A stretch of 64,000 nt of DNA from Oculina patagonica. Lineage: Eukaryota. The DNA lies in contig NC_135760.1 of assembly GCF_052425735.1 (NCBI RefSeq), positions 5,890,001 through 5,954,000 of the forward strand. Direction: 5' to 3'. Below are positions 38,571 through 41,500 of this stretch, piece after piece. Position 1 is the first letter of the stretch. Each line of letters begins with the position of its first letter. The translations under genes were made by a program, and so were the position numbers. A model generated the notes under the pieces. The model searched no databases. It was given only the letters and a program-made list of their open reading frames with translations, and had not been told where the DNA came from.

Positions 38571-41500
38571 ATGAAATTCGCGCTGGTTCTGGGGCTTTGC
38601 CTGGCGTTCGCCTTCGTGGTTGAATCGTTTGAAGAAGAGGCAGTTTTGGAAGGCGAACAAGGAAAGCAATCATTTGAAGACGAGGCAGTTTTGGCAGACG
38701 AGCGAGGAAAGGAATCGTTTGAAGACGAGGCAGTTAACGTTTTCACGGACGAGCAAGGAAAGCAATCGTTTGAAGACGAGGCAGTTTTAGGAGGCGAACA
38801 AGGAAAGCAATCGTTTGAAGACGAGGCAGTTTTGGAAGGCGAACGAGGAAATAAATCATTTGAAGACGAAGCAGTTTTGGCAGACGAGCAAGGAAAGCAA
38901 TCGTTTGAAGAAGAGGCAGTTTTAGCAGACGAGCGAGGAAAAGAATCGTTTGAAGACGGGGCAGTTTTAGAAGGCGAACAAGGGAATGACAAACGTCGTT
39001 TTGGCCCAAAGGTAAGTGTTTTCTCTTTGAAAAGTATTAACTGAACTATAAAAAAACAAGGAGCTGTCTATTCTGTTTTGTTAACTCAAGCTTTTCGAAG
39101 CTTCATATATGAACTAACTACCGCGTCACCCACAGTCATGCTAAAGACTTAAAACCAAATACAGCCAAACATTTAAATGTAAAAAAAGCAGGTTTATTGA
39201 CGATCTTTACAAAAAGTGGATATATATTATTTTAAGTTAACGTCCCTGCCTGGTTTGGAAACTAATTTATCGATTTCAATTCCGCCAATTGTCGGAAGAT
39301 ATCTCGATCCCGAATGTTTCTCAAAAGGAACACCATTAACAAGTCCCTTAATATCTGATTTTCAGTGTACGACCGATGCCAACTGTAAACACAGCGGAGA
39401 ATGCTGTTTCATGACTCCCGGCGACCTTCTCGGTGTATGCAGGCCTTGCCGTCGAAAGTCTGTAAGTAATTCTAAAAGATATCAACAGTTTTTATTTCGG
39501 GTTTGGGCCGTAATTCTAGAGAGTAGTGACCATCTGAAGGATTGGACAGTTTAAGCACCTCGATCTTCTTTTTCCTACAAATAGCAATCACCCCACGACG
39601 ACGACGAGCTAGGAAAGGAATCGTTTGAAGACGAGGCAGTTTTGGAAGACGAACAAGGAAATGACAAACGTCGTCTTAGACAAAAGGTAAGTGTTTTCTC
39701 TTTGAAAAATACCAACTTAACCATTAAAAGACAATAAGCTGTCCATACCGTTTCGTTAACTCGAGCTTTTCGAAGTTTTATATGAGCTAACTACCACGAC
39801 TTCCACAGTCATGCTACAAGACTTGAAACCACATACAGTGAAACATTTAAATGTAAAAAAAGCATGTTTATTGACTACCTTTACTAAAAGTGGATATATG
39901 TTACTTAAAGTTAATGTCTGCCTGGTTTATATATGACCATATATAATCAGCCCATTAAACCACCGATAAGCTACAGTAATTTATAGATTTCCGCCAAATG
40001 TCGGAAGATATCTCCCGAATGTTTCTTGAAAGGAATCCCATTAACTCGTTCCTTAATATCTTATTTTCAGTGTAGGACCCATGCCGACTGCGATCGCCTA
40101 GAATGCTGCGGGCGTTTCGGCCGATGCGTGCTTAAAATAGGACCGTTTTGCCGTCCAAAATTTGTGAGTAATTTTGAACGATATCAATAGTTTTAATTAC
40201 GGGTTTGGGTATTTCTCTAGAGTTGTGACCATCCGAAGGTCCGACAGTTTTAGTACCTCAATCTTTTATTTCCGCAAGAAGCAACCACCCAACGGGTATG
40301 AAAATTTTGGCAACCTGTAGCTTGTGAGCACTCAGTGGCAAAGTCCACTGCAAACCATCAAGATATCACAATTAAGTAATGCAACAACTTAAAAAATAAT
40401 AATCGGTTTTTTTGAAGACGTGCGAAAACAACTTTTGAGGATTAGCCTCAATCTTTCAAATTGCAATTTATTTCCATCCAAGCCATCCGCAGCCAGGAAC
40501 GCTTAATTGTTAACAGTTTCAGTGGTCTAATATAGCAGTGTTAATAAAAATGGACCATTATTTGTAGGTTTCCTACGACGAAAATATAAATTTAAAATCC
40601 GTGAAAAAGCCCCTTTAACCCACCGATAAGGTAATTTACAAATTTTTGCCAAATGTCCGAAGATACACGGTGGAAGATCTCTCAAATGTTACTAAAAAAG
40701 ATCCCATTAACAAGTCCCTTAATACCTGATTTTTAGTGCAAGACCGATGCCGACTGTGATCCGCGCCTAGAATGCTGCGGACGTTTAGTCGGCCGATGCA
40801 TGCCTAAACCTGGACCCTTTTGCCGTCCAAAGCCGTCTGTAAGTAATTCTAAAAGATATCAACAGTTTTAATTACGGGTTTGGGTATTTCTAGAGAGTAG
40901 TGACCATCGGAAGGATCCAACAGTTTTAGTACCTCGATCTTTTATTTCCTGCAACCACCTGACGGGTATGAAAATTATGGTATCCTGTAGCTTGTGGCCA
41001 TTCTGGCAACGCGGACTGCAAAAACCATCAAGATATTACAATTCAGTAATATGCAACAACTTTAAAAATAATTTTCGAATGTTTGAGGACGCGCGGAAAC
41101 AACTTGTGAGGATTAGCTTCAATTTTTCAAAGTAACTGTAATCCATTATTTCCATCCAAAACATCCGCAGCCAAAAACGCTCATTAATAGATTCAGTGCT
41201 GTAATGTAGCAGCTGTTAATAAAAATTAGACATTTTGTATAGGTTTCCTACGACGAAAACACGGCAAATTTTGGCTACACAAAAATCTGTTAAAATCCGT
41301 GACAAAGCCCTTTTAACCCACCGATAAGCTAATTTATAAACTTTCGCTAAATGTCCGAAGATACACCGTTGAAGATAACCCGAATATTTCTCAAAAGGAC
41401 CCTACTAACAAGTCCCTTATTATCTGTCTTTCAGTGTAAGACCGATGCTGACTGTGCTCGAGGAGAATGCTGTCACAGAGTCGGGCTTTACAGTCGATGC

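Follow-up and report, generated by a model that had tools for sequence, protein, structure and literature searches.

What becomes of one half of a two-part, disulfide-rich fold when the exon that encodes it is multiplied and the other half is not? This question is raised by a 64,000-nucleotide stretch of the stony coral Oculina patagonica (RefSeq contig NC_135760.1, positions 5,890,001 to 5,954,000; hereafter the window), and in particular by the gene LOC144646285, which is annotated as "uncharacterized". The window is animal DNA of ~39% GC with GT..AG introns, and all gene and exon coordinates below are positions within it on the + strand. LOC144646285 joins several exons with six cysteines each in front of a single terminal exon with which, in related folds, only one of them would be paired. 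We conclude that the extra exons are probably duplicated cassette exons encoding disulfide-directed beta-hairpin (DDH) mini-domains, each closed by a new bond between its third and sixth cysteines, in a coral-specific secreted protein.

Six-cysteine modules and their C5-C6 loop

A six-frame scan found 13 six-cysteine modules on the + strand of the window, all with the pattern C-x5-C-x4/5-CC-xn-C-xm-C (cysteines C1 to C6), together with five terminal exons, each of which follows the last module of its gene and holds four further cysteines and a Pro/Thr-rich tail. Every module is a symmetric phase-0 exon: it begins on a codon boundary, its length is divisible by 3, and it is flanked by ttttcag on its 5' side and by gtaagt or gtgagt on its 3' side. 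For LOC144646285, conceptual splicing of exon 1, module A, a linker exon, modules B, C and D and the terminal exon gave a protein identical across all 349 residues to P0020 (XP_078361944.1 / KAL9980362.1), which is RefSeq isoform X1 (349 aa), while isoform X2 (P0019, 315 aa) is without module C and otherwise complete. The features of the gene are as follows.

38571-39011, + strand: exon 1 of LOC144646285, with signal peptide, acidic repeats and KRR followed by FGPK; it ends in phase 0 and encodes residues 1-147 of P0020.
39366-39461, + strand: module A, 32 aa with six cysteines, C4-x10-C5 and C5-x2-C6, and a C-terminus reading C-RRKS.
39585-39686, + strand: linker exon, 34 aa, an acidic spacer ending in KRR-LRQK, present in P0020 and P0019.
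40071-40163, + strand: module B, 31 aa with six cysteines, C4-x5-C5 and C5-x7-C6.
40737-40838, + strand: module C, 34 aa with six cysteines, C4-x6-C5 and C5-x7-C6, a cassette exon.
41435-41542, + strand: module D, 36 aa, C4-x8-C5 and C5-x9-C6, the N-terminal half of the complete domain, adjoining the terminal exon.
42339-42446, + strand: terminal exon, C7-x3-C8-x5-C9-x4-C10, a Pro/Thr-rich tail and the stop codon.
38928-40294, + strand: tandem duplication; a blastn self-comparison of the window aligns 38928-39597 with 39603-40294 at 76% identity.

The precursor runs from the signal peptide through the acidic repeat propeptide, KRR, A, the acidic spacer, a second KRR, B, C and the complete domain of D plus terminal exon (D+T) to the Pro/Thr tail. 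B and C abut without a linker in the conceptual splice, and dibasic sites lie at the end of exon 1 (KRR), at the end of the linker exon (KRR) and just past C6 of A (RRK).

All seven modules that adjoin a terminal exon (1286, 14721, 27011, 41435, 47680, 52372 and 57449) have C5-x9-C6, and the extra upstream modules have C5-x7-C6 (7362, 14022, 26339, 40071 and 40737) or C5-x2-C6 (39366), exactly as a preliminary description of this DNA had stated. The x9 spacing recurs in four more complete genes of the O. patagonica genome, in the homologues from Pocillopora and Orbicella, and also in Bv8 and DKK1; since it is invariant in these other complete domains, the departure from it in the extra modules is real and meaningful. 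The same description had given weight to the shortening as position-dependent and present in every intact extra copy; that weight is smaller than the count of six suggests. The 6-nt gap that produces x7 falls at the identical nucleotide position in all five x7 exons, and nucleotide alignment of module A with these exons indicates that A kept both C5 and C6, lost a further 21 nt between them and gained 15 nt in its C4-C5 loop. The alignment rules out a different derivation of A, in which its fifth cysteine would be the old C6 and its sixth a new addition. Together with the module order B-C-D that the paralogues have in common and with the approximately unbiased (AU) test given below, the common gap position argues against six independent events, and the alignments point to about two deletions, one from x9 to x7 that occurred once and one from x7 to x2 in A.

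Complete domain, isolated module and cysteine pairing

The preliminary description had taken the modules as halves of a colipase fold, and sequence profiles and structure prediction uphold this premise for D+T. A profile of module plus terminal exon, compared with PDB sequences, placed Bv8 (E 0.005), MIT1 (0.014), DKK1 cysteine-rich domain 2 (CRD2) and DKK2 at the top with end-to-end, marginal matches, and a profile of the module by itself ranked DKK1 CRD2 first (E 0.005) and Bv8 next. The AlphaFold2 model of D+T (predicted local distance difference test, pLDDT, 82.5, from an alignment of eight coral sequences) matched MIT1 with a Z score of 5.9 (2.6 Å over 56 residues), DKK1 with 5.6 and 5.1, Bv8 with 5.1 and DKK2 with 3.9; these matches hold the top ranks and span model residues 1-56, and draxin is also among the best. 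D+T has ten cysteines with the first-half spacing C-x5-C-x4-CC-xn-C-x9-C, as in DKK1 and Bv8. The cluster has neither the CxC motif (C7-x-C8) nor the long C6-C7 loop, its pattern being C6-x5-C7-x3-C8-x5-C9-x4..20-C10. No Pfam family (including PF06607 and PF01114/PF02740) was matched above cut-off by single exons or whole proteins, Pfam Prokineticin reaching E 2.3, below cut-off, in P0009 only. The AVITGA N-terminus, which prokineticins need to activate their receptor, is absent, the N-termini past the KRR sites being FGPK-C and LRQK-C, and an ESM Atlas feature search returned no match. These comparisons and the predicted model support D+T as a distant, divergent member of the colipase fold, of the prokineticin/MIT1/Dickkopf type.

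The colipase fold has been described as two head-to-tail DDH motifs (bioRxiv 10.1101/485722), and the DDH as a hypothesised precursor of the inhibitor cystine knot (ICK) (bioRxiv 10.1101/485722; PMC6468893), with the consensus C-x5-19-C-x2-[GP]-x2-C-x6-19-C (PMC6468893). In MIT1 and prokineticin the disulfides are C1-C4, C2-C5, C3-C7, C6-C9 and C8-C10 (PMC6468893), as the preliminary description had quoted them. Module D and the other terminal-adjacent modules fit the DDH consensus, and A keeps its Gly with one extra residue. In the AlphaFold2 model of module C alone (m6b4f687f4bf5; pLDDT 76, 20-sequence alignment), the helical turn and the C4-C5 hairpin are predicted as in the full domain, with hairpin strands at residues 12-15 and 20-23 compared to 11-16 and 19-24 in D+T.

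On these data, the most likely model is one in which each six-cysteine exon would encode the N-terminal subdomain of a divergent colipase-fold domain, a DDH held by C1-C4 and C2-C5, and would also carry C3 and C6, which are normally bonded to the C-terminal subdomain from the last exon. Tandem exon duplication would have added modules in frame because the exons are symmetric and in phase 0; the modules are spliced jointly, and C can be skipped. A convertase would then cut at the dibasic sites, freeing A as a ~32-residue peptide and leaving B-C-D-T as a second product, and the orphan C3 and C6 would pair within each extra module to give a three-disulfide DDH mini-domain. The C5-C6 segment, which structurally would belong to the C-terminal subdomain, would lose its constraint in the extra modules and shrink to the length needed to return C6 to C3, so the outcome would be a connectivity that is knottin-like on paper (1-4, 2-5, 3-6) in a register unlike that of canonical ICK toxins. 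Going by cysteine parity, the intramodule C3-C6 bond appears to be the simplest pairing, since only this bond spares the D+T pattern in products with a single extra module, which are isoform X2, the neighbouring gene product P0001 and A after cleavage.

Bonds of the orphan cysteines between modules (B to C, an extra module to D+T, or one chain to another) would produce a pseudo-colipase double DDH or covalent oligomers instead. The colipase fold is itself two DDH units tied by inter-subdomain disulfides, B and C have no linker between them and the total cysteine count is even in every isoform, all of which would suit such bonds. However, only one extra module lies past the second KRR in isoform X2, P0001 has one intact extra module, and A would be alone if cleaved; these single-extra products offer no second orphan pair unless the canonical D+T pattern is disturbed, and we therefore consider inter-module bonding unlikely. 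An alignment of B-C-D-T with single-module homologues, made with MAFFT, was discarded, as it split the homologues over two modules.

The preliminary description had proposed more than an intramodule bond: a stand-alone knottin arising by exon duplication, in which each extra module is or becomes a true ICK with C3-C6 threading the ring formed by C1-C4 and C2-C5. The six-cysteine C-C-CC-C-C framework with short loops is present in A, B and C, loops of x5 / x4-5 / x0 / x5-6 / x7 fall inside the range of ICK toxins, and module C in isolation has no structural neighbours other than ICK-type peptides. Pfam gave sub-threshold matches to the conotoxin O and Magi toxin families; none of the curated ICK toxin families rose above cut-off (Toxin_18 E 0.028, Toxin_23 E 0.25, Toxin_22 E 0.96) and all of these matches are far under threshold. 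The alignments themselves, however, are offset by one cysteine. All three ICK matches place model residues 1-26/27 on toxin residues 9/10 to the end (35/38), and phmmer against lambda-MeuKTx-1 puts module C1, C2, C4 and C5 on toxin C2, C3, C5 and C6. In the model the hairpin is bounded by C4 and C5, whereas ICK toxins have it between C5 and C6, and C6 of the module falls outside every ICK alignment. These cysteine-shifted alignments imply that the CC pair of the module is not the CC pair of the toxins and that C6 is without a counterpart, suggesting that the isolated module is a DDH core whose register differs from that of the ICK by one cysteine. Nor is the connectivity 1-4, 2-5, 3-6 unique to knots, as it occurs too in unknotted folds such as the cysteine-stabilised alpha/beta (CS-alpha/beta) toxins. 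We thus regard a true ICK as improbable, and the arising knottin as a possible but less likely reading of the locus. What stands of the proposal is that all cysteines are kept and that C3-C6 is the simplest pairing by parity; what does not stand is the equivalence with the ICK. Prediction of the module structure, which had been suggested as a check, was similarly divided, since for module C the hairpin core was kept alone, but the C6 tail had low confidence and there was no cysteine-for-cysteine ICK match.

Whole ICK toxins do align with the D+T model, on residues 22/24-56/59 (C5-C10), over 31-34 residues with a root-mean-square deviation of 1.3-1.8 Å and Z of 2.1-3.1, and this placement suggests that the knottin-like unit of the full fold takes in the C5-C6 loop. 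That in turn might explain why the C5-C6 segment seems frozen at x9 in front of a terminal exon and able to shorten elsewhere. All of these toxin matches come from predicted models at low Z, and are suggestive, not proof.

Origin, constraint and joint splicing of the copies

The unit copied in the tandem duplication at 38928-40294 runs from the 3' end of exon 1 through intron 1 and module B into the beginning of the following intron; its copying created module A and the in-frame linker exon with the second KRR site. The linker exon is chimeric, joining former intron sequence (39585-39602) to a duplicate of the 3' end of exon 1, and A is the youngest and most divergent copy. A paralogue at 6.5-16 kb is 84-88% identical to LOC144646285, and module B is the positional counterpart of the module at 7362 in this paralogue (92.5% nucleotide identity, cysteines kept). 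The order B-C-D is common to all three multi-module genes, which argues that the architecture is older than the gene duplications. A tree of the modules is a polytomy in its core, so that a single origin is neither proved nor rejected, and the AU test does not reject one clade of all six extra modules (p 0.39).

The family is clustered, with 17 of the 18 module copies in the 529 Mb O. patagonica genome lying within ~200 kb of one contig. The module profile, searched against 1.8 billion representative proteins, returned a handful from stony corals only (O. patagonica, Pocillopora and Orbicella), all "uncharacterized"; the coral homologues outside O. patagonica have a single module each, and protein searches found no multi-module form in other species. 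Sequencing runs that carry the labels of other organisms, whatever their relation to O. patagonica, do hold multi-module transcripts. Two further hits, an oomycete PAN-domain protein (P0003) and a metagenomic Dickkopf_N/DUF7107 repeat protein (P0006), proved to be spurious matches of a short profile, and the amphioxus protein P0002, considered as a half-domain parallel, holds three complete domains instead. Two loci elsewhere in the genome, L017 (G000:C10:18096183-18096284, - strand) and L018 (G000:C3:5747945-5748034), have a canonical CxC second half (CPC and CGC) and seem to be conventional relatives of the prokineticin/Dickkopf type, from which the cluster split off. A literature search for this coral family or its accessions found no paper.

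Coding features are retained in the extra modules. The lengths of all 13 module exons are multiples of 3, compared to 30% of indels in the flanking introns; splice sites and reading frames are kept, and none of the 36 cysteine codons in the six extra modules is lost, while only ~30% of the other aligned residues are identical between A and B as counted from their alignment. Sequence comparison of the paralogues indicates that the family is evolving fast. Such exons might also be young, near-neutral, in-frame passengers of a birth-and-death cluster, functionless and heading for decay. That would fit the truncated B-type module at 25556 (15 aa, two cysteines), which is still spliced into P0001, the equal identity of exons and introns between paralogues, the five nonsynonymous to one synonymous codon differences between B and 7362, and the confinement of the multi-module form to one species in protein searches. 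It sits poorly, however, with six extra modules that retain every cysteine codon, splice site and frame in the face of several indels and so low an identity of A and B, with a B-C-D order kept in three paralogues, and with B-, C- and D-type transcripts in runs labelled as three organisms. We find it hard to credit that the extra exons are mere passengers.

We compared Logan contigs of four sequencing runs (X1, X3, X4 and X10) with positions 38300-42700, and found GT..AG exon joints 39686>40071, 40163>40737, 40838>41435 and 41542>42339 in three of them, the latter two joints being present in each of X1, X3 and X4. Run X10 covers the introns as in DNA and holds none of these joints, indicating that the joined forms stem from RNA. 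Contigs of run X1 matched modules C and D without mismatch and joined C, D and the terminal exon with gene-specific bases, and record 25 of run X4 joined the 3' end of exon 1 to module A, again without mismatch. A 436-nt contig of the same run (record 26) joins the exon-1 end to B-type, C-type and D-type modules and the terminal exon; taken at first as a transcript of LOC144646285, it was reassigned, as it carries exactly the variants of the paralogue at 6.5-16 kb and is thus the mRNA 7362 > 14022 > 14721 > terminal exon. Modules were therefore included jointly in single transcripts, and only D-type modules were joined to the terminal exon. The preliminary description had favoured joint inclusion over mutually exclusive use, and both the RefSeq models (P0020, P0019 and P0001) and the contig joints agree with it; splicing of the extra modules only directly to the terminal exon, which it had named as the contrary outcome, is not what these contigs and models contain. 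Mutually exclusive exons, each joined straight to the terminal exon and so forming alternative complete domains, would suit symmetric phase-0 modules of similar size and the skipping of module C in isoform X2, but with several modules in series within single contigs and RefSeq models, and D-type modules alone meeting the terminal exon, such an arrangement is scarcely conceivable.

Several side observations concern the introns and exon 1. A 6.6 kb intron (7455-14021) separates the B-type from the C-type module in the paralogue, compared to 0.57 kb in LOC144646285, and the long intron is still spliced correctly in record 26 of run X4. In the DNA-like run X10, contig depth over segments 40358-40651, 41240-41386 and 41534-42121 is 10^4 to 10^5, with many irregular joints; these segments are highly repeated elements within the introns between modules. 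In exon 1, a 45-nt unit is repeated 7.9 times in tandem (38623-38983, 81% matches) and encodes an acidic 15-aa repeat, SFEDEAVLxxEQGKx; each unit finishes in G-K, and the array could be a plain acidic spacer or a series of amidation or cleavage signals. Copies of exon 1 also lie near 6540-7000, 21080-21700 and 46316-46740, with the number of repeats varying among paralogues.

Elsewhere in the window, P0001 contains in series the truncated module, 26339, 27011 and its own terminal exon. The truncated B-type module (25556-25600) has C1 and C2 only, keeps its splice sites and is included in the RefSeq model; this copy is in decay, and through it the product gains two cysteines. A further copy of exon 1, with signal peptide and acidic repeats, lies at 20734-21765, ~4 kb 5' of the first module of this gene, and what the preliminary description counted as its gene 3 may be the distant first exon of the P0001 gene. 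The GC-rich block (44-47%) at 29900-33950 holds long open reading frames and a gag-like CX2CX4HX4C zinc knuckle near 31973, and probably represents a retrotransposon that entered the cluster. The 160 N at 54032-54191 mark an assembly gap or a masked stretch.

Standing of the model and comparison with known systems

Several points weigh against DDH mini-domains closed by C3-C6. Exon identity between paralogues is not above intron identity, and this comparison gave no signal of recent purifying selection on B and C. Both of these modules have Leu in place of the DDH Gly, and their hairpin loop has 5-6 residues compared to the published 6-19. Among the AlphaFold2 models of module C, five in number, pLDDT varies from 55 to 76 and the C6 tail is weak, and the 34-residue model matches ICK peptides with Z of only 2.0-2.5. 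The C3-C6 bond itself is a prediction from cysteine parity, and cleavage at KRR is one from the sequence alone. The joint between A and the linker exon is absent from the contig rows listed and is supported by the RefSeq model; module A 31-mers are confined to runs labelled organism C, and contig depth over A is low in the sole RNA-like run that holds it. No member of the family has been characterised. Its role is a matter of speculation, and a fast-evolving secreted family of defence, venom or signalling peptides comes to mind because of the signal peptide, the acidic pro-region, the tandem lineage-specific cluster and the rapid evolution.

The exons are already in RefSeq, within "uncharacterized" proteins, and the relationship of DDH, ICK and colipase folds is established thinking; what is new is the natural multiplication of the first colipase subdomain by exon duplication, expressed, with one copy bracketed by cleavage sites. 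The origin of small disulfide-rich scaffolds is a long-standing question in toxin and peptide evolution, and the DDH-to-knottin hypothesis has come mainly from the comparison of finished folds. This locus provides a young, dated series in one cluster, from a complete two-subdomain fold to copies of the first subdomain with two orphan cysteines each, and includes the stepwise trimming of the loop of the missing subdomain and one copy that lies between cleavage sites. Self-folding of a half-domain and re-pairing of orphan cysteines thus become directly testable. In its strongest form, the case would be one of half-colipase exon duplication yielding free three-disulfide mini-proteins, with A released (~32 residues) and its orphan cysteines re-paired into a knotted or new DDH-based fold; we hold this to be a long shot, but if true it would be a new disulfide-rich scaffold arising from a subdomain, caught in the act. 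The cluster also represents a branch of the prokineticin/Dickkopf superfamily that is unannotated, restricted to corals, expressed and fast-evolving, and is a candidate source of new peptide scaffolds.

Among known systems, the prokineticin/Bv8/MIT1 (AVIT) family is like the coral domain in having ten cysteines in two exons with the same split point, C1-C6 and C7-C10, and the same first-half pattern, C-x5-C-x4-CC-xn-C-x9-C, and it gives the best profile and structure matches. In contrast to this family, the coral domain has no AVITGA, has C7-x3-C8 rather than C-x-C and a much shorter second half, and stays below the Pfam PF06607 threshold, and its precursor ends in a Pro/Thr tail and has a long propeptide of acidic repeats with dibasic sites; within the searches made, extra copies of the first-half exon are not known in the prokineticin/MIT1 family. 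Dickkopf CRD2, including that of cnidarian Dkk1/2/4-type proteins, has an identical C1-C6 spacing (x5, x4, x0, x8, x9), with DKK1 CRD2 as the top match of the module profile (E 0.005) and Z 5.6 to the model, whereas the coral proteins have no CRD1, a shorter second half and a lineage-specific tandem cluster.

Multi-peptide toxin and neuropeptide precursors cut at dibasic sites are common in cnidarians. The coral gene is like them in its signal peptide, its acidic pro-region and KR/RR before the Cys-rich units, as well as in its internal acidic spacer and second KRR. Its units, however, are non-identical subdomains of one fold, not repeated whole peptides, and A alone is bracketed by sites, processing being a prediction from the sequence.

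With ICK toxins such as lambda-MeuKTx-1 and delta-TRTX-Hm1b the modules have in common the six-cysteine C-C-CC-C-C framework and 31-42% identity over 26-27 residues, and with lambda-MeuKTx-1 also the motifs C-x-[ST]-D-A-D-C and C-R-P; they differ in the one-cysteine register shift, the C4-C5 hairpin, the unmatched C6 and the low Z of 2.0-2.5. DDH peptides (U1-liotoxin-Lw1a and the MIT-like atracotoxins) resemble the extra module in its predicted two-disulfide hairpin core. Compared to these peptides, the coral module has two added cysteines at positions unlike those of ICK toxins, B and C are without the consensus Gly, and the coral DDH unit would have been freed from a colipase fold by exon duplication.

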